A stretch of 64,000 nt of DNA from Leidyana gryllorum EB-2025a (lineage: Eukaryota > Protista > Apicomplexa). The stretch is from assembly GCA_048772705.1 (NCBI GenBank), contig JBLWGC010000159.1, forward strand, positions 1-64,000, given 5' to 3'. The notes under the pieces are model-generated. The model saw nothing but the letters and a program-made list of their open reading frames with translations, did not search any database and was not told where the DNA came from. The position numbers were made by a program, and so were the translations under genes. Shown here piece after piece: positions 1-56,470 of the stretch (its first letter is position 1; each line of letters opens with the position of its first letter).

Positions 1-297
1 GCAGGACTGACATCATTTATGACCTGCTGGAAGGTTTGATAAATGAATGACTGAATATGTAAAAGATGATGTACGCTTGCTTGATCGATGCGCCTACGCC
101 TTAAAAAGGTCTACAACGGTATCGCAGTCTCGAGACGGTGACTCCGAAAGCTCGCCGGCAAAGTGCGCCGGCACGCCAGTAACAGCCCTCGGCTCGCGAG
201 CTAACCACCAATTCAGTATTCCACGCGCGGAAAACCATCGTGTTGGCTGTCTCCAGTAACTCCTTCCCCAACTTCAAGTCGCAATTTGTGTTCAGAA

Positions 298-2670: not shown

Positions 2671-3088
2671 TTCACGCCAATACTGGCGTTGCTAACAACT
2701 AAGTTATCGAATTGTACATTAGCTCGATAGTCATCAAAGTAGTGCGTGTAATAGTGTGTTCGTCCCAATGTAAAACGAGCGTATCATTGACAATCATCGC
2801 TCAACAAGGGCGAGGCATATTATCCAATGTCAGTTGACTCAAATCACTTAGCAGTTCAAACATTCGAATCCATTCAAAAGCAATCAAATGCAATCACATA
2901 GTACACAGGCGACCATAGACGACGATAGACTACTTCTTCTTCGAGCCTTTATCGTCGGCTTTACGCCCGGGGAAATCGTCCTCGTCCCACCAAGGACAGC
3001 TGGCGGTATTGCAGGTGGGAATGTGATGTACAGTCATAGTCACTGAGCTTTGAAACCGGGCGGATGATCAATTTTTTGCGCTATCAAA

Positions 3089-4259: not shown

Positions 4260-4322
4260 AAATGATACTGTACAAGAGTCGTCAGCCATCAACATGATCC
4301 CACGTTATATATATACATCAAG

Positions 4323-6111: not shown

Positions 6112-6153
6112 GATCAAGAAAATGACTGTCCGGCTCTCGCTCAATTTTTTTGG

Positions 6154-8162: not shown

Positions 8163-8285
8163 TTGAGCACACACAATTCAAGTGGAGACGTGTCCCAATG
8201 GTGGGTGGGTGCTGGCCAACTTTTTTCAGCAAGCAGCAACTCATTCTCAGCGTTTATTCGGATTTCCTCCACTCAACTACCCAAG

Positions 8286-10498: not shown

Positions 10499-10526
10499 AT
10501 AAGTGTGTCATCATCAGTTTTGGTAT

Positions 10527-10814
10527 TTATTGACGCAGGAAAAACGAATCCCGAATGCGAGGGTCTAAGCCTTCGGAGCGATAGATAGAGTCAACATCCA
10601 GAGGATTGGGATCAATTGTACCATCTCGATAACGCCATCCGTGGATTGACCGCTGAGGAAAGAACCGGTAGGGGGTCCGTGAAGCAAAGTAATAGGCTTG
10701 CGAAGCCTCAAGGCACATGTGAATATACATCCCAATCATCACGCAGAGACATGGTATGTGGATCCAGCTGAACGATCCTAAAATAACACTCCCTTGCTGC
10801 TGCTTTCTACTCAT
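10527..10814 (-). CDS. Small single-pass membrane protein, unknown function
   Basis: ORF with one hydrophobic stretch (WIHIPCLCVMIGMYIHMCL) and a polar tail; fills the space 3' of HSP90. Confidence 0.45.
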   Translation of the reverse strand: MSRKQQQGSVILGSFSWIHIPCLCVMIGMYIHMCLEASQAYYFASRTPYRFFPQRSIHGWRYRDGTIDPNPLDVDSIYRSEGLDPRIRDSFFLRQ

Positions 10815-10897
10815 TTTGCTGCGACCGGTAGTCACAAATCAGGGACATTGTGTTTCATTGGAGTTGGTCACGAAAATCCCCCTCTTTCGTTTCGCAA

Positions 10898-11197
10898 TCA
10901 GCGGGACTTGCGCAACAACCTGGCTGAAGCCGAAGCCGAAGAGCCAGAATCAGTCGTGGTGGGGGCCACACTAGTGGCCGTCGTGGTCGCGTCGTCAGCC
11001 TTCGGCAGTGTGTCGTCCCCTTCTTTGTGCTTGTGATCTTGCAAGGAGGGAAACCCGCCATGATGTGGCTCGTCCCCCCTCCCTGATCCCGGCAGCAACC
11101 CGCTCACTATATCGAGAGCTTTATCAGCTAATCCCAACCAACTTGTCTGCGCTTGCGCCAAACCAACACATGCCAGTCCGAAAGTCAAGAACTTCAT
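10898..11197 (-). CDS. Small secreted Ser/Thr-rich protein
   Basis: Signal peptide MKFLTFGLACVGLAQA; Thr/Ser-rich C-terminal half. Confidence 0.6.
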   Translation of the reverse strand: MKFLTFGLACVGLAQAQTSWLGLADKALDIVSGLLPGSGRGDEPHHGGFPSLQDHKHKEGDDTLPKADDATTTATSVAPTTTDSGSSASASARLLRKSR

Positions 11198-11212
11198 AGG
11201 TCTTCTGATTTC

Positions 11213-14200
11213 TCAGTCAAACTGGGACCGCCGGAACTCTTCGTCAACTGCTATCGGTTGCTCGCCGCTCCCACTGGGAGTTCCGAGATCGTTTTCCCCG
11301 CCGAACGCACTCGATGCTGACGAAGATTCCGAGTCGGAAGACGCCCTGTCGTCCATAGCTGAGCCTTGGGCGTATCCTATACACCCGGTTTGAGGTGCAA
11401 ATAGGTCCGTATTCGGGATACGCGAGAACAACTCATGAGTGTGGGGCACGGGCGACCCGAGTGGCTCACTCTGGTCAGATTGCGTGTGTCAGGTACCAGA
11501 TTGGGACACGCGCACTCACCGTTATCTTCATGGTAAACTCTACTTCAGCCACAACCGTGCGGTTCCACCCAGAAGTTGCAGTAAGAATCTCCGCCAGCTG
11601 TAAGTAAAAAGTTGGGTAATCGAGCGGCTTTCGAAGGGTGCTTCATTAATCCAACCACGGAGTATAACAGTGATATACCAAGTCATCACGTATCACGTTT
11701 GACCGACCCCGATGGAAATAACTCACCCATTGATCAGTTTTGCTTCTTGCGATGAGAGCCTCAGCAATCTGGATAACTTGAGGCATGTAGCCAACTTTGT
11801 GACGTAACCTCTTCTGTCTCCGTACATTGACATCGCGCTCCTGTCGGATCTTCTTCGACCGTCTAATGACAGCAAAATGTGCTCAGCGCTCATTGAGGAA
11901 CCTACTTGCAGAGTTTCACAATCTGCGCCAGGAGACGCGAGTCATTAACGAGTCGCTTCAATAAATCCTTGGAGTTCGGTGAAATGACGTCAATGATGAA
12001 GACAATTATCTGTCTGCGGGCGGGAGGGGGGATGAGAGGATTGCCAATGAGCTTTAAAATCTCACTTGACTGAATTGTGCAATAAAGTATTCCACTTGTA
12101 GGCAAAGAATAACTCGACCAAAGCCGGCACCAAACGTGCCCCGACTTCCCGGGTTCTCTGAAGGAGGGTAGGTGGGGTGGCGACGTGAGCCAGAATTGGC
12201 CGCTTACGGGAGTGTCTAGTTGTAAGATTGAGTGAATCAGGGTGACAAAGGACAGACAAAGTCCACCAACACGAGGTTTGTTGCCTTGGGGCAGATCCAC
12301 TCGCTCCAATTTGACATGAACAACGTCCGATTTGGTAGTGGCTGACGATTTCTCCGGCGACAATGCCTCATTGGCGCTTGGTACGGTAGATCCGCTAGTG
12401 GACTCTGGGAGCGGCTCTGGCGGTGATGAACTCGAGGGGGCTGCCGGGCCCCATACCTCCTCTGCCATTCGTTCCCAAGTGGCGGAGGTGGTAGTGTCTA
12501 TACTCTTGGCTGGCACGAAATCAACGTGACTGACTTCGTCCGTAAACATTCTTCGAGGTGTGTCACTATCCATCGGCGAAGTGTCCCCGTTCTTGGGGCT
12601 TTGACTGCTGGAGGGTACAAGAGCTGTTTCACTGGCAGGTGGCTCTGAGGTGGGACTGTTAGAGGTATTCTTGTTGGTGTTGTCACTGCTGTTGTTCCGA
12701 CCTCTTCGTCCCTTGCGGTAGTGTCGGACAGCTCGGACCTGTGGAATTATATACGAGCAGATCAGATCTTGCAGCGCCCCCGATGTGATAAGATTGGTGA
12801 AATCACGCATTGCCATTAGCGTCTTATCAGCCAGCCGGAACCCTTCAGCCGAATCGTTGTGATAAGCTGACTCCGCCTGCTCCTCCTCCTCTTGCTGTGC
12901 GTTGGAGACGGATGACGGCCCGCCGGTACCACCCGAAGCACTCTCGGACCAACCAGTGTTGGTACCTTCATCTTGCCAAGAATGCGGTCGGAGTGCGCCA
13001 CCTGCTGTATCGCCACCACTTTCACCCGACCATTGAGGACTGAGTGAACCCGTCGGACTTGCTGGAGGGCTTTCCCATCCAGTTGCAACCGCGTCCACTG
13101 GCCCGGTATCAATAACACTCAATGGTACGGTCTCCCCGGCTGGGATCAATGGTGGCGAGGGAGGAGGGATGGGTATGTTTGGTTTAACTAATGGGGTGGA
13201 TCTTGGAGGCGAAGGACTTCCGCTAGCATTGTTATCTGCACCTGGAGTCCCTCGAAATCAAGACTGGTAACTCACAGTTATTCATAGCGTCATACTCGGC
13301 CATACTCAAGTGTTCCTCACATTTGGTCAGGATAAGGGACAAAAGATCGCTGCTGGCCCGCGCGATATCCGCGCACTGAAACACCACGCATCAAGTTGTG
13401 CTGTCCCGGAGACACCGCCACTTACGCTAGAATTGAGCCCTCGAAGCAAATACTCGTATGCTTGAGGCGAAAGTAGGCTGCCGAGCAACACATCAAAATC
13501 CTGGATGCCCGGTCCTGACATTATCACGTGGCAGATTACAGACACAATTGTCTCAGTACGCTACAAAAGTTGCGGACACCTTATCCCAATCGCCTATTCT
13601 TACCTCCACCACATCCAAGGGACTTCGATCCCAAGGTTGAGTCTGCCCAATCTGCTCTACTAAGTTCAACAACAATGATGGAGCCTGCGGCAGAGCGTGA
13701 TGAAGTGGCAGCGAGGATATATTACCGAGGGAAGGAAGGTGAGGACTGGAGCACTTGATTGTGTCAGTAGACATTTGACACATTCTGCAATGGCATCACT
13801 ACCCATATGACGCAATAGTTTGTAAGCTAGCGGGTCTTCTGCCGGATTCAGAGGCGTGATAAAAGCGGGCGTGGTCTCTGGTTCCGCGGCTGGGTCACGT
13901 GCTCGTTCGCCAATCAGGTGAAGTGAGTACAGAACGTGATCAGGCGCCTTCAACAACAACATTCCGAGCACATTGGTGAAACGAGTGGCAGCCCTCTCAT
14001 CCAGTGGGGGAGGCAAGTCCAGCAAAGATAAAAGTGTAACCGAAGCAAGCCGATCCTGCAACATCAACCGACCAATTCGAGGTGAGCCAGCACAGACAAT
14101 GTCTTGAGCCACCATGGGTAATTTGACCAAGCGTAAATGATTAATATAGTCGGCCTCAACACGCTCTCCCGGAACGGAAATCAGCTCAGCTAGTCGCACC

Positions 14201-30333: not shown

Positions 30334-31872
30334 CTACCAGGGTTCGATATCTCGAGGCTCTCCATCGTGCTTAGGCGACTTGGCCCCGCCTGCAGCACGA
30401 CTATCACCTCTCTGTTGCCGCCCGGCCAGTGGATCGTATACTGCCAACTGAAAAGGGAGAATTATCAATATATTGAGCCTGCCACACACACACGTCACTC
30501 TCACCGCATCACGTGCTGCGTCAAAGGCATATGCTGTTGATGAGTCAACTGCGAATCGCAATCCGTCACTATCCAACCAGTCACTTTTAGTCGTCTTTAG
30601 CCTCTTTCTAAAGTCCATCAGCTTTGCGACACCCTCCGCTTCTCTCTGTCTTCGACTCTTACTCTGCTTCTTGGCCTTCATTACTTCTCGCTTTCTCTCG
30701 TGCTCAGTCAGCAAATCCGCGTCTTGAACAGCCATGATATCCAACTCTTTCCTACGCTCGCTCCCGCCGTCTCCGGCTCGCAATTCTAACTTCTCTTTGA
30801 TCACTTTCGTACCCATAATCGTGGCCTCCTCCTCGTCCTCGTCCTCTCCTCCGTCGTCCTCCTTCCTTTTCTCCTTCTCGCTCTCCGCGACTCCTTCCCG
30901 CCGCTCTTCCTCTCCGGAGACGACTTTGGGTCCACCTGCGGCACCGCTTCCACTTTGCGCCTTGTTGGCAATACGTGCTTTGATGGAATCAATCTTCTCT
31001 TTTGTTCCTGGAACCGCTTCGGGAGTTTGGACCTGCCGCTGCGACAGACCAGCGCTGGCTCCCAGTACGTCGTGCGCACTCATGAAGCCTTTCGCTCTGA
31101 CCCCGGATTCTGGGCGACTGTCGCTTCGCAATTCAGCTCTACCCTCGTCCTCGCTATCCTCTTCATCGCCAAACGAGAGCAGCGCCTTATGAGCGTTCTC
31201 TTTGATCAGGGGGCGCTCAGAAGCCGCAGCCTTAGCCTTTTGCCCCTTCTCACCCTCTCCCTCTCCCTTTGCCGCCTCCGGAGGACGAGAAAAGTAAATG
31301 TCTCGAACGACGATATCGCTGAAAGGATTCACCACGACTTCCGCTCCTGTGATCCGCGGCGGATCGAACGGACGGTCGTCCTCGTCCACCTCCAGCTCCC
31401 CAATGCGGGTGACATTCCAAAGTGTTGGCCCCGTGACCTTGCCAAACAGCGTGTGTCTCCCATTCAGGCCATCAGCTCGGTCCAATGTGATAAAGAACTG
31501 GTTGGAACCCATACCATTCTCGCGAGACGCCACTCCCAACAGTCCTCGGTAACGGTATTTCAGACGGGAATGTAATTCACGCTTGAATCCATCGGGACCA
31601 AATGTGGTGTCTTCGTCTAGCCGCACAAAGTGAAGGCGTAGGATGTGTAGATACTTACCACCGGAACGGGGATCACCTGTTTGTATCAGGAACCCTTTGA
31701 TGATACGGTTGAACACGGATCCCACATAGTAGTTCTCCAGGCACAACTGAACGAAATTGCGACAAGCTTTTGGGCATTCCTTCGCCCACAGGTCTACTTC
31801 TATCGGTCCGAGGGTGGTTTTCAGAATGACGCGCCCTGAGGTTACGGGCTCGAGAGCGTAGACTTCAGACAT
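30334..31872 (-). CDS. CWC27: Spliceosomal cyclophilin CWC27
   Basis: MSEVYALEPVTSGRVILKT, LWAKECPKACRNFVQLCLENYY, ELHSRLKYRYRGL, NPFSDIVVR, LLSFGDEE, SAHDVL, VYDP. Confidence 0.92.
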   Translation of the reverse strand: MSEVYALEPVTSGRVILKTTLGPIEVDLWAKECPKACRNFVQLCLENYYVGSVFNRIIKGFLIQTGDPRSGGKYLHILRLHFVRLDEDTTFGPDGFKRELHSRLKYRYRGLLGVASRENGMGSNQFFITLDRADGLNGRHTLFGKVTGPTLWNVTRIGELEVDEDDRPFDPPRITGAEVVVNPFSDIVVRDIYFSRPPEAAKGEGEGEKGQKAKAAASERPLIKENAHKALLSFGDEEDSEDEGRAELRSDSRPESGVRAKGFMSAHDVLGASAGLSQRQVQTPEAVPGTKEKIDSIKARIANKAQSGSGAAGGPKVVSGEEERREGVAESEKEKRKEDDGGEDEDEEEATIMGTKVIKEKLELRAGDGGSERRKELDIMAVQDADLLTEHERKREVMKAKKQSKSRRQREAEGVAKLMDFRKRLKTTKSDWLDSDGLRFAVDSSTAYAFDAARDAVRVTCVCGRLNILIILPFQLAVYDPLAGRQQRGDSRAAGGAKSPKHDGEPRDIEPW

Positions 31873-32157
31873 GGTTTTTTTGGGCGCTTGGTGCTCCCCT
31901 GACACCCAGTCTGTAGGACGGACTGGCAGAGGAATATCAAAGTAGCTCGCCAAGCCTCATCTGCGAGTCAATCAACATAAGGGTAATTACAGCACAGCAT
32001 CATTGGTGCGGAGTGCTACTGGTCGAACTGTAACTGCTTTTGGGCACTCATGCCAGATTTGTGCGTGACAATCGTGTGCGTTGATGTAGCTGAGTGAGAC
32101 GGGTAGAGAGGGTGCTCCCACTCCCGCAACTGACACTGCCGGGAATAGGAATTCATT

Positions 32158-32461
32158 CCTGTCTTCTTTTTGGCCTAAAAGATTGGTCCATCAAAACAGG
32201 TGAGTTTGATATGCACTCCCACATTTGCAGCCGGGATACACGGTGTCACTGGTTGCCAAACGCCTTTCAGATGCCGAAAGGATCTCCATATGAACACCGA
32301 TTGTAGCCGTATGTCGGGCTGACGGTTGGGTGCAGTGTATTGCGTGACAGGTACAGTATATGTACTCCATATCTGCGCAAGACACAGCGGCTTACTGGTG
32401 GTGGCCCGTTGAGCGGAACTCGACTTTGGAACTCGAAGCCACTGGAGGTGCAAAGTTTTGA
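32158..32461 (+). CDS. Possible micro-exon gene, 3' part only
   Basis: Removing three candidate 27-37-nt GT..AG introns leaves a stop-free frame ending YCVTAAYWWWPVERNSTLELEATGGAKF*. No start or homology identified. Confidence 0.3.
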
Positions 32462-32632
32462 TCACAACTAGTAGCGATTATGGCTATCGCAAGAGGTTGG
32501 AGGGGTTAGGAGTTGAGGGTCGCAATCAGCGGTCGGCGACCCATCGTGAAAAGAGCGGGGCTAACTACTACTAATCGAATAAGCGACAACCCACGAATTG
32601 CGGGTGATGAAGAAAAAAAGCGTGAACGCACG

Positions 32633-33247
32633 TCAACAGAGGCCTCCGTGGTATCTCTTGGCAGCTTCGTCGGTCTGCATACCGGGGATGTAACAATGCT
32701 TTGGTAAATGGAGTTGGAGGTGTCGAACCCATTTGGGTACCGGACAGTTGAACGTGAGCGGAGCATGTTTGCAGCGGAATGTGAACATATCGAAAGCGGG
32801 AAACATCCTGAATTCCAGTCGCCACTGCAGATGCGAAACTGTCATTGGATGGTTTGGGTCGCGCATGACTTTCTGGCGACGTTTGGCTAATGCCCGTTGA
32901 TTTTCAGCATCTTCTAAGGTTCGGAACCGGTGGTGTTCCAGATCTCTAATCGTGGCGGCGAATTCGGCGGCGAATGCTGCATCCACTCCGACAGATTCCA
33001 ATTGGGCCTCAAGGAGCCCCCCCCCTATGGAACATTGTCCGTTGAGATCTTGTACAAGCGCGTAATCTTTGAGTGCCTCTACGGCCTCCTCAACAGAGGC
33101 AGCGCCGCGATTGAATAACCATCGGCGGGCTGCCTGACTCCGAAGACCTGATATGAGTGTGGAGACCTTTTGATGGTCCGCTGGCGTTTCGTTGGTATAA
33201 CGGTCTATATATGCCAGTTCTGATTCACCTGGCCCTTGAACAATCAT
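32633..33247 (-). CDS. Gag capsid CTD-like protein 2 (retroelement-derived)
   Basis: VQGPGESELAYIDRY (major-homology-region pattern Q-x3-E-x4-Y-x2-R), KVSTLISGLRSQAARRWL, ASVEEAVEA. Confidence 0.7.
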   Translation of the reverse strand: MIVQGPGESELAYIDRYTNETPADHQKVSTLISGLRSQAARRWLFNRGAASVEEAVEALKDYALVQDLNGQCSIGGGLLEAQLESVGVDAAFAAEFAATIRDLEHHRFRTLEDAENQRALAKRRQKVMRDPNHPMTVSHLQWRLEFRMFPAFDMFTFRCKHAPLTFNCPVPKWVRHLQLHLPKHCYIPGMQTDEAAKRYHGGLC

Positions 33248-33276
33248 CTAGCTCATAAAAAAAGGGCAAAAAAAAA

Positions 33277-34167
33277 TCAACGCGAGTTGTAGTGCAACTC
33301 CTCTGGAACGAACGCTTCGTTCGGGAAGTCGCCAAAGAATCGCATTCCGTGATCTTCAAGTTTGAATTTTTCTTGAAGTCGCTCCATCCATTGTGGAACA
33401 TCGCCGTCCAATCGAATGATTGTATTGAGGGGAACAAAATAGCCAATAGGCTCTGTTACCACTTCGTGCAAACCTATCAACAGACGAATACTGTTGGGAC
33501 GCAATTTGTGGTTGATCACAGCTTGAACTCGTTCTACACGCGCGTGCAGCTTGTATTCAGCCTCTGCTTCGCTGGCAAAACTGTGAGCGGCCAAATCAGA
33601 CAACAACGCGCCAAACTGATTCAACTCGCTATCTCGTATACCACTCGAACCCAATTTGCTCAAAAGGTATTCTCGCTTTTGAGAGGATGACGTCGTGAAA
33701 CAAAACTCTTTATGGGCTTGCAACGCGTCCGAAACACTGGCAGGTTTCCGCGCGTACACAAAATGTCGACATTGTGTCCCTCGGATGCCGCGAATGTAGG
33801 CCCGAACCACTTCAGCGGCATCTAAGGTGGGGGGTGGATCGGGCCCGGTGTGGGCATTCGCCAAAGCTGCGACAAATCTCAGGGCATAAGCAAAAGGCCC
33901 TTCACCAGCTTCTTGGCGAGTATGAGATGACGTCACAGCCGGAGCTCGCAGGGCTGGAGCCATAGCCTGTTCCAACAGGATTTCAGCAGCCCGTGTGGGG
34001 TCGTTCATCATTGTGATGTTGCTGATGTCATGTCCGAAACGGCGCTTGGCAGTGTCCGCCAGCAAGTTTAGTGCACCCAAAGAGGGTTGACTAAAGTTGC
34101 GGGGGATACCCTGATGCCTGTGGCCCGGAATCGCCACTCGCTTCTTCTCTTGAGGTTCCATTTCCAT
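33277..34167 (-). CDS. Gag capsid-like protein 1 (retroelement-derived)
   Basis: ALNLLADTAKRRF (NTD-like), RQEAGEGPFAYALRF (MHR), VVRAYIRGIRGTQCRHFV...KPASVSDALQ. First in-frame ATG at 34167. Confidence 0.72.
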   Translation of the reverse strand: MEMEPQEKKRVAIPGHRHQGIPRNFSQPSLGALNLLADTAKRRFGHDISNITMMNDPTRAAEILLEQAMAPALRAPAVTSSHTRQEAGEGPFAYALRFVAALANAHTGPDPPPTLDAAEVVRAYIRGIRGTQCRHFVYARKPASVSDALQAHKEFCFTTSSSQKREYLLSKLGSSGIRDSELNQFGALLSDLAAHSFASEAEAEYKLHARVERVQAVINHKLRPNSIRLLIGLHEVVTEPIGYFVPLNTIIRLDGDVPQWMERLQEKFKLEDHGMRFFGDFPNEAFVPEELHYNSR

Positions 34168-34208
34168 TTTTTTCAACCTTTCAGCCCCCTTTTTTAACAC
34201 TCATGTCC

Positions 34209-37200
34209 TCAACGGGCTAAGAACCGAACTAAATCAACAATCGACCCCACTATTTTTATCAAAGCTGCTGTCTCCACACTCTCTGCGATCGGGACTGTCT
34301 CCAACCCTCTACCACCTTCTTGTGACAACGAATCGAGGAACTGCGTTTCACCAAGGTGTTATCGCACACACACACACATTGTGTCTCGGCGGCTTACCAT
34401 CGTTACGACTTGTCCCAAAGTCTTCTTTGACACTCCGGCAATATTCAAACTCGTCAGAACCGCCAGCCTGCGCCCACCAACGAATGTCACCATCCATAGT
34501 AGTCCCTTACCATTGTTGTGTTATGCTGCGAGCGACATGTTCCTGAATGACTTGTTCGTAGAACTCGTTATAGCTATTGATGTTATCGAGGTGAAGCACT
34601 GGGAAGTTGATTGTGGGGTCCAGAGCTATCAAACCCTCTTTGATTTGAGCAATGACTTGGGTCTTGTCAATCTCAAGCCGTCTTATTCTCATCACAATGT
34701 CCTCTTCCTCGTTGTCTATCAAGTTGTAGCTCGTAACGGGAGCTGCTTGTAGGACTTGACGAAGTCTGAACAACTTGGGGATGTCATGAGCTTCAATGCA
34801 CGCCTTCAATGGCTGCATTACAAGTTGCAGTCCGTAGATGTCGAGATACTTGAGTCCTAAGACTTTGGGAATCTTGAATTTCAGTCTCACGCTCACAGCC
34901 GCTGCCACTCGTAAGGCCTGAGATGGAGCAACGCTCCCACTGCCATCCTTGCCGGCTGACTTACTCCCGTCGGCACTTCCACCCGGCGGCGCCCCTGTCT
35001 CGATTATGATGGTGGTGGTCCGCTTGGGGACTACTGCTCCTCCCTCTTCACTTGTGAGGAGAGCATCTGCCAAAGTGACCATGGATGTGCCCAAATCAAA
35101 GTCGAAGGCCATCAGTCCCATTTTGTGATAGGCCGTGTCGACAGCTAAGTGTTTGATTCTGCATTCGAGTACTCCAACGTCCTCCTTTCGTAGATCGACG
35201 GTGGCTTTGACCCGATCAACTCTGGCTTTAATGACCAAGTTGACATGTGTGGGCACAGCAGAGGCAGTGTTCGACAATAGCTCTTGTTGTCGCAAATGGC
35301 GAAGTGTGGCGCTGTACACACTCGAGGCAGAGCTCTGAAGTTTCGGGACTTGGAAGTATTCGCTTAGACTACGATTAGAGGGGAAAGCCGAAGCCATGGC
35401 ACTGCCTTTGAGGAGTGGGGTGGAGGAGAGTAATCCGGGCGTCAGTCGGCTGTGTTTCATATTGGCGTCGACAGTAATCATCAAACATCCCTCCATCAAA
35501 ACTGGCTCTATCGAGCACTCCAATATTCTTCTCGACTTGTTACCGTCAGCAGTCTCCATCAGTCGACTTCGTAGTTTCCCAGCGCTACCGCCGAGAGACC
35601 CGAACAACGACGGACTTAATATATGTCCTCCGTCTATAACGCTTCGGCCTCTGTCACTGATCATATCATCTTCTTCAGTTGCCAGCAGCACCACGGCCTC
35701 GCGTTTCTCTGGGATACACAAGACTCGCATCAGGTCTATGTCACAGAGACTCTGGAGCATCGCAGGGGACTTGAGGTTCGGTCGAGACGGGAGCTCGTAT
35801 CTGTGGGACATCTCCGCATATTCGTAGTCGCAACCCAATCGAAGTCTCAATATGTATTTGAGGACATCGAGTCCTCCGCTCCATACAAAGCACTCCCCGG
35901 CTTCGATGGCTAAACAATACGATTCCGTGGCAGCGATTTTCTCCATCTCATTGGTGAGCCAACATGGACTCGGCATCCCGGAGGCGTCTTCGATGGCCGA
36001 TGATCCCTCGTATTTGCGACGCAATTTCAGATAATCATCGGTATCTCGGAGAACCCAATTGCAGACGAGTGTGACGCCAGCATTGTTTTTGAGAATAATT
36101 CTTCGCAAACAGGCCCGACTCAGAGCTCTAAGATCGCGAACCAAAGCAGCTGGAGCCACTCTCAGCCAATTCTCCACCACGAGACTCGATCTGTCATGCA
36201 GCGGCAACAGCTCGTGGGTGGCTCCTTCACGTCTCTGGAATCCAATGCCCACCCGCATCATGGAATCCAACCGTCTCTCGACGCGGACCTCGCGGAAATC
36301 TTTCATTACGCGGGCCAAACAGCTCTCGTGTTGGTCCATTAAGACTGTGCGAGGGGGGTGCGACACATCTGCAGACCTCAGACCCTCGGTATTTCCAGAG
36401 AATGGGTCTCTCAACAGCTCAACCAGACTTAGTACACACGGCAGCAGCCGAAGATCAAATGGTACGTATCGGGCAGCCGACGCAGTCAGAGACCGTTTCG
36501 CGTCCTCACTCTGTGACAACCCCAAATACAGAACAGAGTTCATCGGGAACAGCTGTATTGAAGAGTGCGGATGAACTATCAACCAGTGACATGTTGGGTC
36601 AGGGTGCTCCATGTCTTCCAGATAGGGCGACATCCGAGGCGGGATCCATACTTTGTCGTGATATAATTGAATGGGGACCGGGAGATCGTTCTCAACAATG
36701 AGACTCGGCTCGAAGACGACACACGGGCATTGGTACTTTGTCCTTTTACTATACACTGCCATAATTCGCAATCCAGTTCGGGCAGACTCGAAATCCAGAA
36801 CCAATACCCCGCCACCAGTCTTGCGTAAATCGTTCATTCGGAATCTCCTCTTGAGAATAAGAGGAGAGGATTGCTTATCTCCGCCTGCCGCGTTTGACCC
36901 TTCAGGCAATTGGAGAGTGACCTCTATCACGTTGAAATGGTAAGCAGTGAACCTCGATGGCTCGGGCGACTCGAGGCTGATCTCCTTTTCGAATTCGGGT
37001 AAATTGAACTCTCTCAAGGGGTCGACGCGTAGGGCAGGTGGCGGAGGGGGAGGCGGCAAATGCAGATTGCGCTGTTGAGAAAGACTCATCAGCCAAGCGG
37101 GACATTTGGCTTTGCCCGCCCGATCATCCATCTTTCTGCGGTATCGCCTTTCATCCATCCTCTTCTGCAAGCTCACATAACCTCCCTCACCTAAGCCGGC

Positions 37201-40200
37201 GCCTTCAGCCGGTGCTGACGGAGACCTCCACCCAGCCTCGACCTCGCTGCCTGCATGGCTTCCCATGATATGATCGCGATATTCACCCTCGTTCTCCATC
37301 CATTCAGGCTCGCTTTGCGACTCTGAGCTCAGTATGTCCTCGTGGCCCGACAGACAGCCGTCCGAGCCGTCACTCCGAGCTGAGGATATCATTGGCTCAA
37401 TGTGCTGTTCCTCCCCCTCGTCGTCCAATAGTGGCGGAAAGGTGATTGGCTCCTCTTCGACTGTGTATAATTTGATGTTCAGAGGCAGAATCGTCTTGTT
37501 GCGGAAGGCGCAGTATGCATCTACGAACCAGAACTCTTGTTGTTTGCATCGGCGTTCGGGCGACAAGCGATGAACATTGAAACTCGAGTGATGAGCTTCG
37601 ACTTTCTTCTGCTCCATCAGTGAGTGCCAATAGGCTCCACCGCCACTGGTATCGTGAGCAGCCCGTAATCTCACTGTATCACTGACTGTCAATGTCGTTC
37701 TCAGCGTCTGACCCGGACGGATAGGCCACGCCGACTCCTCTCCTGCCTGCGTGATCAGTACGCGCCACGGAAGTAAGTTTCGGATCTTTATTTTGGATTC
37801 GACGCGCAGTACCTTCGCTTGACATGCCTCACTAATGTTGACCAGCGGGTTCCTGATAGCACACACAAGCACTCGCTCTTGCTTGCTGCCAGTGACGTAG
37901 TGGAGTGAACGAGGCTCGTCACCAATCTCAATGTCATCGATTCGCTGTATCTGAGACACATGTCCAAATATCTCGATTGCCACTTCAGAGTCGGCTGGTA
38001 TAGGGCGCGTGTCCTCGGGAGTGAGCTCCATGAGCTCTCCCGTGGCTCCGAATCTGACCATCACTATCTCATCAGTCTTATTTTGTATCATCAGACGGTG
38101 ATGCAATTCGTAAACATCGGGTTCCCATCGACACCGCAACATGGTGAGATGACGACTTTTCGATGTGTCGAGGATCAGCGCTCGAGACGGAACTGGCACA
38201 CCATCAATCTCTGCTGTTTGATCGGGATCTTGCGATGCGTTGGTGGCTGCCGAAATGACAAAGTATTCGTCAAACTGTTTCTCGAGATACATCTTCTGGA
38301 GAAACGCTTCCGGACTCGGATTGTCCTGTTTTCGTCCCGGCAGAGGCACTCGCACCCACACCCACTCACACTCCTCATACGGGTGACGGAACAAATGCTC
38401 CCGAACGGCTCTGGCATCACGAAGTACCGTACGATCCTGGAGGTACACGAGTTCGAGATTCTTAATTCGCGACCACGGGGCTGTGGCCACATTGATAAAC
38501 TCTGGTGATGAGTCAGCAGGTGCATGAGATACAAACAGCTGTCTCCGTGGTCCGCCCGAGATAGGCTCGATGCGGGTAAGGGATGCGACAGCAGAACGGA
38601 GATTGTCCATAGAGTGGACAGTCAAGTCGACCCTCCCCACTGTCAGTCGCAGAGACAACTCGTTTTGCATCGGGGACGGCTCGTCGAGTGTGTTAAGGCC
38701 GGCAGAGTCTTGATTCGAATGAACCAGTCGCCGTCGGAACGTCATGACGGATTTGGTGGCGGCCACAATCTCCTCCAAGCCGCACGCTGAGCCGCACAGA
38801 GCACTGACTTTGTCCATTCTCCAGTCGAGATCCACAGAGTAGTTGCCGTCAGTAGAGATCTGAAGGTCTACATCACCGAACGTACTGGCCACCAATAAAA
38901 GTGTGTGAATCCCGAGATAATCGAGAAGGCTCAAAGCGATGTGAAACTTTGGCAACTTGAGTTGAAAGTTGCCGGTTGGCAGCCGCGGGGAGGGATGGAA
39001 GCCTGCAGAGCTTGGTGGTGGGGTCAATGCCGACCCAAAGTTATACATATCTTCCGCCACTCCACCACTCTCACGGTGAAACAAGTGTGCCAGTCGACTC
39101 AGGTAGCCCCAGCTGTCCAACAGATTGTTCAGCAGCATCTCAATGATCCGAAAATCGTCTTTGGTGAGCATCAATTTCACGTCATCGATATGATTGAGTG
39201 TTTGATCCCCCTCTGAGCTCAGCGAGAACGCAACCGGACTCTCTAGTATGGGTGCCAACACCCATCCGGTGCTGTGTCCGACGAGCTGATGCACTCTCCA
39301 CATAGTGTCGCCACGTTCCTTATTGAAAGTGAAGGTACTTTCAGCTGCGGTGGGTCCGCGCAAATGTCCGCCGCGAAACTCCCCCAAATACGCTCGAGCG
39401 TCGTTCACAGATATCGTCATGTCGCTCAGGGGGTCAGATCCTCCGATGATAGGGCCCAAAAGGTTCCCGGATCCTGGCACACCACTTCTGCGGCCGATGG
39501 CGTCCACTTGGTCGAAAGCCAAATAAACGCCCACCACAGTGCGATAATCTATCCTCGACTCTCCTCCCTCAGCGGCCTGATCCAGCATGCCGGCAGCCAT
39601 TATGCATAACTCAAAGTCTTTGACGGTGCATTGGACACTGCATATCGGAGTCCTTATGGAACTAACTTCTCTGTGCAGTTTCAAGGGCAGCGGATCTGCT
39701 CTCGTCATAATGATACCCAAAGCTTCTTGCAGCGGCGGCACCAGAATTTGCACTGTATTATACGTCATGGACAGATCTATCGCCTGTCCTGTGTTCTGGA
39801 CGGAGTCGGCTTTGAGCTTACAGGTCTCGCAGTATATCAGGCGAGCCGCGCTCGGCAGATCCGGCATCGCTCCGGGGCTTCGGTAAACAGAGGCCTCCAC
39901 GGAGAGATCGTCAACCTCGCAGCAAAAGTTTACTCCCCCTGCGCGCGTTTGCACAGCATTTGCCCTAATACTGCCGGCCGTCATCCCGAGATCCTGCAGG
40001 TTCCCGAGATCGTCCGGTACAGAGAGGAAGACAGTTTCACGTATCTCGATCTTCATCTCACTAATGCCTTCATCTGGCCCGATCTGCGGGATAGGAAGGG
40101 TCCAATTTCCCTCCATAATCTGATGATTACTACTTTCTCGGGCTTCTTGCCTCAACTTCTCGATCTCGGGGTAGTCCTTCCAAGCTCCCCATCTGGGGTT

Positions 40201-42779
40201 TGCATACCAAAGGCGAGTCATAAAATGGACAGAGGGCACTCTACAGGTTAAGGGCCCTTCAGCTGACATCCACACAGACCGAATGGCGACTTCCCATTTG
40301 GTCAGTTTCTCTCTCCCGCCGCGTCTTTCAGTCATCAGAGAGGTGAAGAACGTGACAGACGTAGCCAACTGCGACAAACTTATGGTTACATGCGGGTTAT
40401 TGTTTGCCAAACCGCCCGTGCGGCTGATGGAACTCGAGTGAACGCCGGGTGGTGACCGTAAGGATGCGGTTCTCATGATGGATCGGGGGTGACCATCGTG
40501 ATACGGAGCAGATCCAAAGACGAGATCGCTCAATTTAGCTTCCTCGATCTCGAGCTTGAGAGTTCCACCCACACTTAGCTCGATACTCCAATGGTCTCGA
40601 GCTATTTGTCGCAATTTGAAGAGCACCTCGTCGTTCGCATACACAAAGACGGCAGTGGTGGGAATGGTTTCTGTGGCGCACGCTTTGCAGCGACACTCTA
40701 GAATACTGATTCGCTCCATCAACTGAGCCAAACTGAGATTGGAAGCTGTGGAGCTCTCGAGACCCAAATGCAGCCCGACGTTCTTCAGCTGTATCTCTTC
40801 AGTCCTCAATTTACGTTCTCGTACACTGAGGGACGGATCATTCCATAAGATATGAACCATTTCAAACTCTGTCGACACTGACAGAGCCTTATTGATTCCA
40901 GTGTACACAAACTCCGGCAGGGTGAACGGAGAGGAGGAATAAGTCGTGCGATCATCACCCCAGGAGATCGCCTGGGTGCCCTCAGCACCCTCAGTCATCA
41001 GCAGTCTCCAGCGGTCACTGGACAACTGGAAGACCTGTAACAAGTTTTGTAGCTCAACGTCCACATACTGCACCGTCAGTCTCCCCTTGTTATCTTCCGC
41101 AGACGCTGAGAGCTCGAAATGGAGGTCCTTAATGCGCGAGACTCTAATCTCTTCCAGATTCACAAAGTCACAACGCGTCATATGAACTTGGAGATCCTTC
41201 ACTGGATCCATATGAACAGCGAGTTCCTTGAGACGAAGAAAGGTTCGCACTGCACCGGGTGGTGTTGGTCGTGGTGGAGGCCTTGCTGCTACCTCCTCCA
41301 AAATAGTGGAGAAGATTTTCAGCACGGGATCGAGAGCCGACTGAGCAGCTTTCACGCCGTGGGTCAGAACGGGGAAGCGGTAGTCGCCCGAATCTGCGTC
41401 CGACTCGTCAGAAGGAGGGAGTTTTATTGAGCGATCTCCGTCATCCGAGTGGGCGGAATGTGCACACTCGCTCTCGGGTAAGCTGAAGAAGCGCGCGTGT
41501 GTGCCACGTTGTTGTGGGCACACGTCCTCATCGGTGTTGAAAATCGATAGCTGTGGATACCACTGATACAATGAGACCAGAAGATCAATATCCAACACAC
41601 TCTCCACCCCAGTCATGTGCAATTGAACGGCGTGTCCAATGAGTCGAACTTGCAGTTCTTCCAAGGCAGTCTGAGGTATCCAGTTGGGCATTGCCTGTGT
41701 TTCAACTTGGGCCAGAGTCAAACTGGTTGCGTACGGGAAGTCCGCCGACTCGATTTCCATTCGTCCAGCCTTCAGGAAGCCGTGTCCATTGCAGTTTTTG
41801 AATGCAATATCAGCGGCTTTCAGTGCCACCCGGAGCGTTGATGACTTGGTGGGCACCTCTTGCGCCAGTATAGCGTCTGCCAAGAGTTTCAGAGCGATCC
41901 AGAGAGAGGGGTAGTGTTGGAGTTCTTTGAGACTCTGCTGATCTCCCAACTGGACTTGAACGGAGTCGAGGGTCGCTTGAGCATAGCCCGGTTCGAGTCG
42001 TAGAAAATCTCGTTGATGAGCTCCGTGATGTGCCCGGAGAGTCGCAGAAATGAAGCATTTGCCCTGGTATCTGACTTGGCAGTGGGCGGACGATTTAATG
42101 ACGCGGGTGATCAAAGTGGCCGTCTCTAAGCGGCCGCAAAGGTGACTGACGCGCAAACCAACCTCTGGACCGTTCTCATCGAGGTCACAACAAGAGATTT
42201 CAGCAGAGGCAACTCGCAGGATGACAAGGGCGACGAGCCACTTGAGGATGGCTGTGGCCAATTTGCCGACCCATTCGGTGGCCGAGCGCGGCGGAGTACC
42301 GATGACGACCCCAATATGGCGAATAGTGGCATCGGATATGTTGATGGCGACGTCGGTTGAGTCTACGTGAAGGACATACTTTGCATCGTCGGTATGCGAG
42401 AGACATATGTGGAAGCGGTTTACGGGGGAGCTAAGTATTGGCCTGCGACGACAGTCAACGAGTGAAGTTGGGGGAGCGATAAGTGAGTGACTCACGTTTG
42501 TTTATGCAATACTTGGACTCCTGAGCAGACGAGGCCGTCGTGGAGGGTGAGGCCCAATACTCTGAGCTCCAGCCGCGAGGGTAATTTGAGGACGAGGGAA
42601 TGAAGGCGAATACGGTGTTGGAGTAAGTTTAAGAACCATTTTACCGATGTCGGATATACTCGATGGAGGAGTAGGAGTGGGAGAGATATGGGTAGAGTGA
42701 GCACTAGTAGTAGGATTAGATGGGTTGTGTTCAAACACACATTGTACAAGGTTAGTGCCCGCTTGTCGGACTCATGCAT
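34209..42779 (-). CDS. VPS13-like bridge-like lipid transfer protein, multi-exon
   Basis: A >2600-aa exon with beta-groove-like segments, repeated VAB-type Asn motifs (IQNKTD, IRNLLP, FRNKTI, VENDLP, LKNNAG) and a VPS13-like C-terminus (LVMQPLKACIE, IRRLEIDKTQV). Two further small exons read WLAVLTSLNIAG...VRFLAR*. A hydrophobic first exon lies at 42492-42779. Confidence 0.75.
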
Positions 42780-42782
42780 TTT

Positions 42783-44759
42783 TTATTCGCTGCTAACTAC
42801 CTCTATCATGTGGTCAACTAGAGTTGCGTCAGTGAGGGTGGTCGAATCAGCTGCCCGGAGGTCTTCAAATCGTTTAGCTGCGGCCAGACGCAAGAGACGT
42901 CGCATAATTTTGCCAGAGCGAGTCTTGGGCAATTCTCGAATTACATAAAACTTGTCAACGGAAGCGATGGCTCCAATGGTTGCTCGGATGTCAGCGCGCA
43001 ACTTCTTGATGACTTCTTCCTGAGAAAGACCGCCTTCCTTCACGACAACAAAGGCAACCACTGCCTGACCCTTAATCTCGTGGTCAACAGCAGTAGCTGC
43101 GGCGTCAGCGACGAGGCCAGTCTTCATCATTGTGGTCTCGAACTCGCGAGCGCTGAACAAATGACCGCAGACGTTCATCGCGTCATCCACGCGTCCACAG
43201 ATTCGGATGAAACCTCCCTCAGCAACGTACTCGCCCGCGTCTCCGGTGAAGTAGTGGTTGTTGTAAGCGGAAAGCCACTTGTCCATGCTCTCACCGGCGT
43301 CGGGGCGGAACAGACCGGGCCAGGGACGACCGATGCAGAGAGCACCTTGCTTATTCAACTCCGTGGGAGGGATGGGCTCCTTGGTGTCGAAGTCAAGGAT
43401 CTTCACGTCAATACCGACCATCGGCAAACCAGCGGCACCGGGGTGGAACTGGTTAACACCGGGGAGAGTCACGATGATGTGACCACCGGTCTCAGTCTGC
43501 CAGTAGGTATCCACAATGGGGCAACGCTTGCGGCCGACGTGCTCGAAGAGCCAGTGCCAAACATCCTCGGTCAAAGGCTCGCCGACGGATCCGAGGATCT
43601 TGAGGGAGTCCATCTCGGGGATCTTGGTGGTATCACACTGGGCCTTGAGCACACGGATGGCAGTGGGGCTGACATAGAATTTGGTCATCTTGTGTCTGTT
43701 GATGACATTGAAGTAGCGATACTGGTCCGGGTAGGTAGGCAGGGACTCGAACAACAGGGTGTTGTTGCCGTGAAGTAGGGGTCCGTAGCAGACATAACTA
43801 TGTCCAGTAATCCAGCCAATGTCAGCGGCACAGCCGTAAACGTCGTCCTCGGTGAGGTCGAAAGTGTACTTGATGGTAGTGGCCACATAGGTCAAATAAG
43901 CTCCAACACGGTGGATGATTCCCTTGGGAGTGCCAGTAGAACCACTGGTGTGGAGGATGAACATGGGGTCTTCACCGCGCATGGGGACGGCTTCACACTC
44001 GTCGCCAGCAAAGGACATCTCAATATCGGCGTGCACAACGCGGCCAAGAGTGGGGAGCTTGGTGGGCAAGACAACGTCGCGGGTGAAGAGAATAGTGCAG
44101 AAATCCTCCACATCCAACTTGGAGACAGCCTCGATGACAGGAGACATCAAATCAATCTTCTTGCCACCTCTATAACCAATGTCACAGGTGATGAGGTGCT
44201 TGCAGTCAGTGGCACGGAGACGAGTTTCGAGGCTGTCGCCAGAGAAACCTCCAAAAACGACCACATGGACTGCACCAAGACGGGTGACAGCATACATGGC
44301 AACAATAGCTTGCCAAATAGTGGGCAAATAAATTCCAACACGGGTGCCCTTCTTCACACCCTGAGCCTTCAAGACATTGGCGAAGCGGCACACGGCTTGC
44401 TTCAACTCGGAGAAAGTAAGAGTACGAGTCTGCTCAAAGTCGTCGCCCTCTTCGATAATAGCGATTCTCTGAGGATGAGATGCTGCCCAACGATCGATAC
44501 AGGCGTCATTGACATTGATCTCGCCACCCTCGAACCATCTGAGCTGATCAATCTTGGAAAAATCTTTGGCCAGACTCTCATCGCAAGCAACCTCAGGGGC
44601 CTTGCGCCAGGGGACGAGGTCAGTGGAGCGCTGCATCCAATAATGGTTGGGTTGAGTCATAGAAAGGTGGTGGGCTTCATCATACTCCTCCTTAGATTGG
44701 ACGTGAACGGGCACGTAGGGAGTGGTAATGGGCTCGGAGACTTGGTTAGAAACTGTCAT
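42783..44759 (-). CDS. acs: AMP-forming acetyl-CoA synthetase
   Basis: HTSGSTGTPKG, ADIGWITGHSY, LGSVGEP, DTYWQTETGG, GRVDD, LPKTRSGKIMRR; intronless. Confidence 0.97.
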   Translation of the reverse strand: MTVSNQVSEPITTPYVPVHVQSKEEYDEAHHLSMTQPNHYWMQRSTDLVPWRKAPEVACDESLAKDFSKIDQLRWFEGGEINVNDACIDRWAASHPQRIAIIEEGDDFEQTRTLTFSELKQAVCRFANVLKAQGVKKGTRVGIYLPTIWQAIVAMYAVTRLGAVHVVVFGGFSGDSLETRLRATDCKHLITCDIGYRGGKKIDLMSPVIEAVSKLDVEDFCTILFTRDVVLPTKLPTLGRVVHADIEMSFAGDECEAVPMRGEDPMFILHTSGSTGTPKGIIHRVGAYLTYVATTIKYTFDLTEDDVYGCAADIGWITGHSYVCYGPLLHGNNTLLFESLPTYPDQYRYFNVINRHKMTKFYVSPTAIRVLKAQCDTTKIPEMDSLKILGSVGEPLTEDVWHWLFEHVGRKRCPIVDTYWQTETGGHIIVTLPGVNQFHPGAAGLPMVGIDVKILDFDTKEPIPPTELNKQGALCIGRPWPGLFRPDAGESMDKWLSAYNNHYFTGDAGEYVAEGGFIRICGRVDDAMNVCGHLFSAREFETTMMKTGLVADAAATAVDHEIKGQAVVAFVVVKEGGLSQEEVIKKLRADIRATIGAIASVDKFYVIRELPKTRSGKIMRRLLRLAAAKRFEDLRAADSTTLTDATLVDHMIEVVSSE

Positions 44760-48756: not shown

Positions 48757-48900
48757 AACTATGGGGGCGTAACTGATCTGCGCTGAGACAACATGTGTGT
48801 GAGTGGGCCCACGGGTAGCCACGCACTTTGCCCATCCGTTCGACTCGGCGAGACGCCGTCTCCTCGGCGGGAAGCACTCCTTTTATTCTTAAACTCGTCG

Positions 48901-48997
48901 GAAGTGCTCAGAGCTTATCACCATCTCGCCTTTTACTAGATGGTGCAGTGAGTTGCTTCATTTCCAGTACTATAAATTTGTTGAGGACCTCTGGTCT
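48901..48997 (+). ncRNA. U5: U5 spliceosomal snRNA; ends approximate
   Basis: Invariant loop 1 GCCUUUUAC (48928-48936) closed by CACCAUCU/AGAUGGUG; basal stem GAAGUGCUCA/UGAGUUGCUUC; Sm site AAUUUGUUG; short GGACC..GGUCU hairpin. Confidence 0.92.
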
Positions 48998-55324: not shown

Positions 55325-56470
55325 TCACAGGTAGGTTCGCAGCTCGTCGAGGGAGACGTGAGTGGCGGTCGAGGGTTGATCTTGGATGGCTTTGACCTCA
55401 ACGTTGCTGTCGCTGCTGGAGAACCATTTTGCCATAGTGCGATAGAACCTGCGGCCTGCTCGTTTTACGCGCTGTCGAGAGGACTTATGCATATGGACAG
55501 GTTTTATGAGACGGATAACGACCTCCTCGAGTTGAGAAACTCTTAGAGATAGTAATCTGCCGTTGTCGATCACTTCCTGCAGCTGATGTGACAGTTTCTC
55601 AATGCTGTGTGTGTGCTCTTCAGTACTACTCCCCAGCTGACAGAGGCGGTCTGCGGTCGTCTTGGTGCTCTGGAGATCATGGGCACGCAATACGTGTATC
55701 CAGTTCCATAGGACGTCTATCGTACACTCGTCCATTTTGGAGCAGAACGCCGTGTCCAGCACCTGGTTGTCGGAATACACCAAAACCGCACTGACTGTGC
55801 CTTACCCGCTCCCGTGCCACCAGGTGGCGGTGACGCAGGATGTCATGCACAGTTAGGAAGTGTTGTGTGCGGAAATGATCCCAGTCGCAAACTCGGCGCC
55901 GATCTTGTTCATCTAAATACCATTGAGGGTCGTTCAGAATTCGCCGTTCTGAGCAGTCCGAGCACAATCGACCCCTTTACCACTGTCAAACTCACCGGGA
56001 TCCTCGCCCCATACAAACAGGTAACGAGGCCATTGATGTCTCACAGATATCTTCTGCTCGCAGGAATCGGATGCAGCGAGATAGTCGCTCAGCACGGATC
56101 CGATCCAGGGATGCGAGCAACAAGTGTGAGGCAGACAGATGATAAAGTCCCGATTAAGAAAACGTAAAAGTTGCAGTCTGCGATCCTCTTGAGGAGAGGT
56201 GTCCGGACTGTCCAATTCAATAAATGGGAATCTGATCAGCCATCTATCATTAATTTTATAACACCCCATCTGACTGATATCACAGCCAGTTGCCAAAGCT
56301 AATTCCGCATTATCAGCGGCAGTCAACTGTAAAAATACATAATTATACTGATCTTCTTTCGTTTCCCAATCAAGCTCCAAGAAGGCTTCGATGCTTGAGA
56401 ACTGCCTGACCCGGCGTCCTTCAAACATCTCACGGACGTTGAGTATGGGTATCTCAGTAGTACGAACCAT
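55325..56470 (-). CDS. Novel-family member C; introns 55949-55995 and 55763-55805; possible short extra 3' exon
   Basis: Introns join three ORFs in frame; shared domain followed by a short coiled coil. Confidence 0.72.

Follow-up and report, generated by a model that had tools for sequence, protein, structure and literature searches.

A tandem pair of gregarine genes probably derived from the capsid C-terminal region of a Ty3/gypsy Gag

Two adjacent open reading frames (ORFs), ORF1 and ORF2, lie on the minus strand of a 64,000-nucleotide stretch of the Leidyana gryllorum EB-2025a genome (Apicomplexa; assembly GCA_048772705.1, contig JBLWGC010000159.1, positions 1 to 64,000 of the forward strand; "the window" denotes this whole stretch). 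Taken together, the sequence comparisons and gene order suggest that the two ORFs belong to a gregarine family that very probably originated from the C-terminal domain (CTD) of the capsid protein (CA) of a Ty3/gypsy Gag and was domesticated by the host. A fuller account, in which ORF1 and ORF2 are tandem paralogues descended from a captured rear half of Gag and act through CTD-based dimerisation, is probable, if less firmly so than the origin itself. Assignment as domesticated host genes follows from: the lack of pol and long terminal repeats (LTRs); conserved synteny; codon usage like that of the host; and relatives that appear to be transcribed.

The pair comprises the following features:
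33277..34167, minus strand: ORF1, paralogue 1 of the family of probable Gag-CTD derivation; ATG at 34167, stop at 33277; 296 aa.
33248..33276, minus strand: T-rich spacer of 29 nt separating the two ORFs.
32633..33247, minus strand: ORF2, paralogue 2; ATG at 33247, stop at 32633; 204 aa.

An initial annotation, made from the DNA letters, had described two co-oriented ORFs 29 nt apart, and this arrangement is confirmed. A GTG at 34200 is an alternative ORF1 start that would give a protein of 307 aa. Because the ORF2 frame differs from that of ORF1 and a TAG lies immediately 5' of the ORF2 ATG, these are two separate genes; a fusion or frameshift product of the two is ruled out. BLASTP aligns the encoded proteins over 187 residues with 23% identity (E=4e-8). 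The alignment covers both the N-terminal module (N-module) and a second domain, which the initial annotation had likewise recognised as shared. A tblastn search of the whole window with both proteins found no third copy, and an exact-sequence look-up of ORF1, ORF2 and the nearby acetyl-CoA synthetase (ACS) gene returned no record.

Both ORFs have a coding character. When all six frames are compared with the codon usage of conserved window genes, the best-fitting frame is the ORF's own in each case; flanking intergenic DNA shows no frame preference in the same comparison. Hallmarks of a mobile element are absent, in agreement with the initial annotation, which had seen no CCHC knuckle, protease, reverse transcriptase (RT), integrase or LTR. 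Here, Pfam gives no match to protease, RT, integrase or zf-CCHC in ORF1 or ORF2, and a repeat search found no LTR-like direct or inverted repeats within 26-42 kb. An RT profile built from natural elements matches no ORF of the window, nor any in L001 or L002, two contigs that carry relatives of the pair; by this profile, no Ty3/gypsy element was found in any of the three.

The relatives are few. An exhaustive HMMER search of 1.84 billion cluster representatives, with a two-sequence profile of ORF1 and ORF2, returned only three true homologues, all of 210-240 aa: P0121 (E=2e-7), P0122 (1e-6) and P0124 (5e-4). A fourth match, to a bacterial repeat protein, was spurious. P0125 was added by a profile word search, bringing the family to six members. 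A word-based search with ORF1 alone found nothing, and no further relatives were present in the JGI metagenome, IMG/VR (viral) or prokaryotic genome collections. The family is so far seen only in gregarines, and the relatives and their gene order mark the window itself as most probably gregarine.

The evidence for a Gag origin is centred on the N-module, whose features in the two ORFs are:
33874..33918, minus strand: ORF1 motif RQEAGEGPFAYALRF, resembling the major homology region (MHR); Q85, E89 and R97 invariant across the family.
33688..33927, minus strand: ORF1 CA-CTD-like module, aa 81-160; four predicted helices; pLDDT 73-86 for most of it.
33197..33241, minus strand: ORF2 MHR-like motif VQGPGESELAYIDRY; Q4, E8 and R16 invariant across the family.
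33017..33247, minus strand: ORF2 CA-CTD-like module, aa 1-77; begins at the MHR.

In six-sequence alignments, Q-x3-E-x7-R is kept in all six members, and no other polar residue is invariant where the module begins. We take this to be the canonical MHR spacing. The MHR is followed in the family by V-x2-[FYL]-[IL]-x-G-[LI]-R and then by a P-x-[ST]-[LV]-x-[ED]-A helix. The motifs quoted in the initial annotation are all present (the two MHR-like motifs, AYIRGIR and TLISGLR, PASVSDAL and AASVEEAV), and its statement that gene 2 (ORF2) starts at the MHR is borne out by the positions of Q4, E8 and R16.

For comparison with Gag, natural Ty3/gypsy loci were fetched from metagenome contigs through a degenerate RT motif, and 16 gag segments, taken as ORF pieces upstream of the CCHC knuckle, were assembled into alignment A6. 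Pfam verifies A6 as Gag, with 9 of the 16 segments matching PF19259 (Ty3_capsid) and 8 matching PF03732 (Retrotrans_gag). In hhalign, family columns 5-75 fall in register on the MHR-containing part of A6 (P=7e-4). Against an iterated set of 61 natural Gag domains the score is 37.8 (P=8.9e-5, hhalign probability 60%), and against Gag from the MHR onward only, P=3.7e-5 (probability 71%).

These scores can be set beside controls. The reversed family alignment scores 15.9; 141 column shuffles give a mean of 10.8 (SD 2.0, maximum 18.6), and 140 four-column block shuffles a mean of 12.2 (SD 1.9, maximum 20.5). Decoys from the same elements give P=0.16 for RT, P=0.51 for the integrase region and P=0.63 for Gag upstream of the MHR. 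The four members from outside the window, used alone, align to the same Gag columns (P=4e-4), as does the two-sequence subset of ORF1 and ORF2 (P=0.023). Single sequences of P0121, P0122 and P0125 each reach P of about 1.5e-3 against Gag.

The comparison was also made in the opposite direction. A hidden Markov model (HMM) of natural Gag ranks P0125, P0121 and P0122 first among 456 targets, namely the four relatives and all window ORFs of 60 aa or more, with E=0.004-0.007 and in the expected register. A weak match of this HMM to the window ORF at 55328-55801 (E=0.023) was rejected as coiled-coil noise lacking an FxxGL motif. When the family N-module HMM is instead run against 1580 ORFs of retroelement loci, Gag ORFs occupy ranks 1-4 and six of the top ten places (hypergeometric p=3e-6, AUC 0.69); the top match, aligned over 68 positions, is a plant-type Gag on contig L090. 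Judged from these profile comparisons, which drew solely on natural sequences, homology of the N-module to the part of Ty3/gypsy Gag that runs from the MHR to the C-terminus is supported.

Among the IMG/VR contigs, 65 match the gypsy-type RT motif, and only two of them, L018 and L041, look like LTR retrotransposons. Most of the 65, which are unannotated, we infer from their sizes and long polyprotein ORFs to be Caulimoviridae-like. The gag of L018 is split by frameshifts and was used as separate ORF pieces. The family HMM finds nothing significant in these contigs.

Structure prediction gives a further comparison, which the initial annotation had proposed as a check in the form of AlphaFold models searched with Foldseek. 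An AF2 model computed from the six-sequence alignment places ORF1 helices at 91-107, 117-126, 131-139 and 145-159, with most of residues 81-160 at pLDDT 73-86; the single-sequence model of ORF1 (pLDDT 42) is unusable. In a Foldseek search of the PDB, the matches of high probability are all retroelement capsids, from four families: the human Arc C-lobe (6tn7; probability 0.85, TM 0.67); the HTLV-1 CA-CTD (8puh_A; probability 0.84, TM 0.65, rmsd 3.4 Å over 80 columns); HIV-1 CA (6ec2_A; probability 0.72); and the Ty3 capsid (6r24_B; probability 0.51). Rival matches, of TetR and channel type, have probabilities of at most 0.15 and rmsd above 12 Å. The proposed check thus returned the capsids in question at the top by probability, yet with every E-value at 0.19 or higher. 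The modelled fold is concordant with a CA-CTD while remaining sub-threshold.

Several results weigh against a Gag origin, some of them in favour of a gregarine-specific helical protein in which MHR-like and FxxGL-like motifs arose by chance. No Pfam Gag family is matched at E<=10 by the two ORFs, by five of the six members as whole proteins or by the six isolated N-modules; this includes PF03732, a match to which had been put forward as a check in the initial annotation. Sequence and profile searches of the PDB with ORFs, members and modules likewise returned no match. All Foldseek matches to the PDB have E-values above 0.1 (at least 0.19), small four-helix domains can match by chance, and a Foldseek search of BFVD gave nothing informative. 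The AF2 model is weak overall, with a mean pLDDT of 55.5 and values below 50 in the C-terminal module (C-module). Profile-profile probabilities are no higher than 60-71%, the family alignment holds just six sequences, and the Gags used for comparison come largely from fungal and plant-type elements rather than alveolate ones. Compared singly with Gag, ORF2 reaches P=0.037 and ORF1 gives no signal. Because the window ORFs are weak on their own, their assignment to Gag rests on transitive homology through the family profile.

A chance resemblance nevertheless fits poorly with other aspects of the data. Three independent tests, namely the hhalign comparisons with their shuffles and decoys, the reverse HMM and the rank enrichment, all identify the same Gag segment in the same register. 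Where the module begins, the polar residues that never vary are exactly those of Q-x3-E-x7-R, and the Foldseek matches of high probability come from four different capsid families. We therefore consider an origin outside Gag improbable. PHROGs searches gave no match, and a weak match to DUF5076 (E about 0.1) was treated as noise.

Outside the CA-CTD-like module, the proteins contain the following regions:
33916..34167, minus strand: ORF1 N-terminal extension, aa 1-84; basic, pI 10.2; coding codon signature.
33280..33687, minus strand: ORF1 C-module, aa 161-296; acidic, pI 5.9; no significant Pfam family.
32636..33016, minus strand: ORF2 C-module, aa 78-204; basic, pI 9.1; Cys/His-rich tail.

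In five of the six members, the protein starts no more than about 15 residues ahead of the MHR. The extension of ORF1 has no counterpart in the other five. Over its first 84 codons, the ORF's own frame is the best of the six for codon usage, and AF2 predicts two helices. The initial annotation had read this region as resembling a CA N-terminal domain (NTD), a reading that does not hold: no homologue of the extension was found, and it does not resemble the part of Gag that precedes the MHR (P=0.59-0.63).

This bears on whether the proteins, alone or together, could form closed particles like those of Arc, PEG10 and PNMA2. Retroviral, Ty3 and Arc shells need rings formed by the CA-NTD, which in the retroviral and Ty3 cases are hexamers and pentamers. 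Derivation from a Gag capsid, the 84 additional residues of ORF1 with their coding signature and two predicted helices, and the presence of full-length HIV-1 CA and Ty3 capsid chains among the Foldseek matches could all be cited for such a host capsid. Against it, the MHR is the starting point of five of the six proteins, the extension of ORF1 shows no similarity to the corresponding part of Gag and has no homologue, and the full-length CA chains match only at rmsd of about 13 Å with TM of 0.19-0.39. Lacking a CA-NTD, the proteins are unlikely to self-assemble into a capsid, and a host capsid system of this type is very doubtful. Of the domesticated capsid system suggested in the initial annotation, derivation from Gag and domestication are retained, on the grounds of profile homology, synteny and codon usage; the capsid itself is not, as the CA-NTD is missing.

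Downstream of the CTD module, a variable linker of 3-60 aa leads into the C-module, which spans about 115-130 aa and has six invariant positions (L168, L172, G176, D191, P258 and P282 in ORF1 numbering). This region, for which no family was detected, is basic in five of the six members (pI 8.1-9.8) and acidic in ORF1. It occupies the nucleocapsid position of Gag, without a zinc knuckle. An internal duplication, in which the N-module would be related to the C-module, was rejected (P=0.31). The tail of ORF2 (32636-32790, minus strand) is rich in Cys and His, with 4 Cys and 9 His in the C-module, and is not shared by the rest of the family; either chance or a metal site peculiar to this copy might explain it.

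The position of the family gene is conserved between distant relatives. The genes that anchor this comparison in the window are:
30334..31953, minus strand: CWC27-type cyclophilin, downstream flank; probable ATG at about 31872; Pfam cyclophilin; 49% identical to its L001 neighbour.
34507..42495, minus strand: 2662-aa ORF, family unassigned, upstream flank; last 115 aa similar to the giant ORF in the corresponding L001 position.
42783..44759, minus strand: ACS, synteny anchor; 51% identical to P0001.

P0124 is encoded on L001, a Logan contig of 20,974 bp with the order ACS, small ORF, giant ORF, P0124, CWC27. The window order is ACS, giant ORF, ORF1, ORF2, CWC27, so that the synteny sought by the initial annotation (ACS, giant ORF, family gene, CWC27) is found. 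The L001 ACS gene encodes 664 aa at the position matching that of the window ACS, and the top ACS match, P0001 (51% identical), comes from a 20,974-bp Logan contig that is evidently L001. The cyclophilin domains of the two CWC27 genes are 49% identical. The giant ORFs, of 2662 aa in the window and 1995 aa in L001, can be aligned only over their last 115 residues (E=4e-5).

Of the two neighbours named in the initial annotation, CWC27 is upheld by the Pfam cyclophilin match and by the closest PDB match, CWC27 4r3e_A (E=3e-55). The label VPS13 is not upheld for the 2662-aa ORF, which has no Pfam match to VPS13 or a related lipid-transfer family and no PDB sequence match. Its sole Pfam match, to an unrelated enzyme family, is at chance level (E=0.23). 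The ORF encodes a very fast-evolving giant protein.

ORF2, next to CWC27, is the positional counterpart of the single L001 copy, P0124. As L001 has one copy, the window pair reflects a tandem duplication restricted to its own lineage. Family orthologues are 21-35% identical, as against 49-51% for the neighbouring genes. The only close pair is P0122 and P0125 (69% identity), of which one member has DNA available, and the remaining pairs are saturated. ORF2 groups with P0124 in a six-sequence tree (support 92/88); the branches are very long, and the tree is given no weight. Sequence divergence and gene order together indicate a family that is old and positionally conserved between distant relatives. 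A syntenic orthologue in a distant lineage, without hallmarks of a transposable element, has been used to recognise co-opted gag genes (PMC8321522), and the L001 gene is such an orthologue.

Some local features of these loci can be noted. In L001, the CWC27 orthologue is split over overlapping frames at 10650-11258 and 11056-12090 (plus strand), the second of which has the same ...PRDIEPW end as the window protein; an intron, a frameshift or an assembly error could account for the split. The gap between ORF2 and CWC27 in the window (31954-32632) measures about 680-760 nt and lacks a frame-specific codon signature. By comparison, ORF1 and ORF2 are only 29 nt apart, and in L001 just 20 nt separate P0124 from CWC27.

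Family members in relatives appear to be transcribed, to judge by the contig names and run type of P0121, P0122 and P0125. EukProt lists P0121 and P0122 under the names Gregarina sp. Poly1 and Pseudo9, on contigs whose NODE names are in the style of transcriptomes. P0125 lies on the Logan contig L002 from run SRR5171258, which is listed as locust transcriptome data (PMC7643970). According to its EukProt source name, P0121 is ORF p4 on a transcriptome contig of 9857 nt, which means that one assembled transcript carries several genes; very compact genomes or read-through transcription would lead one to expect this. L002, whose run is listed as RNA-seq, holds three ORFs in 2.2 kb, with a Cyt-b5 gene, not the giant ORF, upstream of P0125.

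Could the pair be a decaying or non-autonomous remnant of a retroelement? The sequence is Gag-derived, and LTR elements have been reported in gregarines (PMC9141347). Against a remnant, the family gene lies between the giant ORF and CWC27 both here and in L001, a relative in which ACS identity has fallen to about 51%. Both frames are open throughout, neither LTRs nor RT accompany them, codon choice resembles that of the host, and relatives appear to be transcribed. Finally, the family has only four relatives, three among the 1.84 billion cluster representatives and P0125 by word search. A remnant is extremely improbable.

If the family is domesticated, the probable course begins with a gregarine ancestor that would have captured the rear part of a Ty3/gypsy Gag as a host gene. 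Each protein then has three parts: a CA-CTD running from the MHR through three helices; the variable linker; and a new, family-specific C-terminal domain. CA-CTDs are homotypic interaction modules, and the CTD module may likewise provide a surface for homotypic dimerisation or oligomerisation. Homo- or heterodimers of ORF1 and ORF2 would then present the C-terminal domain to nucleic acid or to another partner. Such a mode of action would resemble the use of a capsid CTD by the SCAN domain, and closed shells are not expected. The function itself, that of a cellular dimerising adaptor, is wholly inferred; it is the likeliest of those considered, and is offered tentatively, at a little under an even chance.

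The SCAN domain of vertebrate zinc-finger proteins is a Gmr30-type gypsy CA-CTD reused for dimerisation. Like the gregarine module, it is a retroelement capsid domain co-opted by the host. In contrast to SCAN proteins, the gregarine family has no Pfam SCAN match (PF02023) and no zinc fingers, keeps the Q, E and R of the MHR, and belongs to a different eukaryotic supergroup. SCAN has been described as a co-opted retroelement capsid domain (10.1101/2025.03.03.638093), and the domain is listed as co-option Crtg7 (PMC8321522).

Comparison with Ty3/gypsy (Metaviridae) Gag itself (PF03732/PF19259) shows an MHR, a hydrophobic-x-x-G-L helix and a P-x-[ST]-L-E-E-A helix that align in register. The gregarine proteins differ in lacking a Pfam-level match, a CA-NTD, a zinc knuckle, pol and LTRs, and in having added a new C-terminal domain. 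Arc, PEG10 and PNMA keep both CA lobes and form particles. With Arc/dArc, PEG10/RTL, PNMA and RTL8, the gregarine family shares the status of domesticated Ty3/gypsy Gag genes without LTRs, and the Arc C-lobe is among the best fold matches; unlike Arc, PEG10 and PNMA, the gregarine proteins have no N-lobe. Within this group, RTL8, which is short and Gag-like, acts against PEG10 particles (PMC11684626).

An antagonistic role of this general kind is the main alternative to an adaptor. Here, the CTD-only proteins would bind the CA-CTD of a resident Ty3/gypsy Gag and block particle assembly, acting as lattice-poisoning restriction factors whose specificity was diversified by duplication. Ty1 p22/p18 and the endogenised Drt2 are lattice-poisoning restriction factors in yeast (PMC4599808, PMC8458377, PMC12530519), and Drt2 is a host gene at a fixed locus (PMC12530519). 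Like p22/p18 and Drt2, the gregarine proteins are CTD-only Gag fragments encoded apart from a full element. The layout, in which a basic region comes after a CA-CTD that has no NTD, is similar to that of p22; Drt2 offers a precedent for an endogenised CA-CTD at a fixed host locus (PMC12530519). Also consistent with restriction are the retained MHR residues, the strong divergence of the family relative to its neighbours, the duplication in one lineage, and the Gypsy-like LTR elements reported in gregarines (PMC9141347).

Other properties of the family are harder to reconcile with poisoning. Restriction in yeast is highly specific to the matching element subfamily, with three interface residues deciding the outcome (PMC12530519), and the gregarine family has diverged too far from the sampled natural Gags for ordinary HMM searches. 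The yeast proteins derive from Ty1/copia, not Ty3/gypsy, are near-identical to the target Gag and are young; the gregarine family is ancient and highly diverged and carries a conserved extra domain. Poisoning would have no need of a conserved C-terminal domain of 115-130 aa, the gene has long held its syntenic position, and the window, L001 and L002 yielded no Ty3/gypsy element to the RT profile. A role as a CTD-only interfering protein is thus possible but rather unlikely. This much remains of the restriction pair envisaged in the initial annotation; "pair" is too specific, as the syntenic relative has one copy.

A heteromeric assembly of ORF1 and ORF2 built on the CA-CTD might also be considered, either as an NTD-less shell or ribonucleoprotein cage or as a two-component system for the control of Ty3/gypsy elements. 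This is improbable. If true, it would represent an apicomplexan Gag-derived cellular machinery that evolved independently of animal Arc, PEG10 and PNMA.

Beyond the pair and its neighbours, the window contains further features of interest. A U5 spliceosomal snRNA gene lies at 48898-48997 on the plus strand (Rfam RF00020; 45 bits, gathering score 40). Its presence and that of CWC27 show that the genome retains a spliceosome despite mostly uninterrupted ORFs. Within the CWC27-type gene, a 42-nt in-frame stretch at 31617-31658 (minus strand) starts with GTAAGT, ends with CTAG and contains no stop; its 14 residues fall inside an insertion relative to the L001 orthologue. This stretch is a candidate for a tiny intron read through by the ORF finder. 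At 58203-63431 (minus strand), a 1742-aa ORF with internal repeats has only Pfam matches of low-complexity type (Apolipoprotein, FAP), and long ORFs at 59105-60370 and 60500-62122 are nested on the same strand. A strand switch is located at about 10500-11900: long ORFs are on the plus strand from 286 to 10498, and from 11902 to 63431 essentially all long conserved ORFs are on the minus strand with short spacers between them.

In animals, the co-option of Gag has been amply documented. A systematic survey of about 740 eukaryote families identified 14 deep co-options of Gag, all in animals, plants or fungi and none in a protist, and its authors note that protists are under-sampled (PMC8321522). 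In the literature, no report was found of a Gag-derived host gene in Apicomplexa, nor of one in any other group beyond animals, plants and fungi. The family escapes every Pfam model and will therefore be missed by gene-finding and annotation pipelines. If confirmed, the family would extend Gag domestication to the alveolates, and would do so with an architecture of its own, in which a CA-CTD without an NTD starts at the MHR and leads into a new domain. It would also provide a test case for the uses of a lone capsid CTD, whether as adaptor or as lattice poison, in a very compact, transposon-poor parasite genome.

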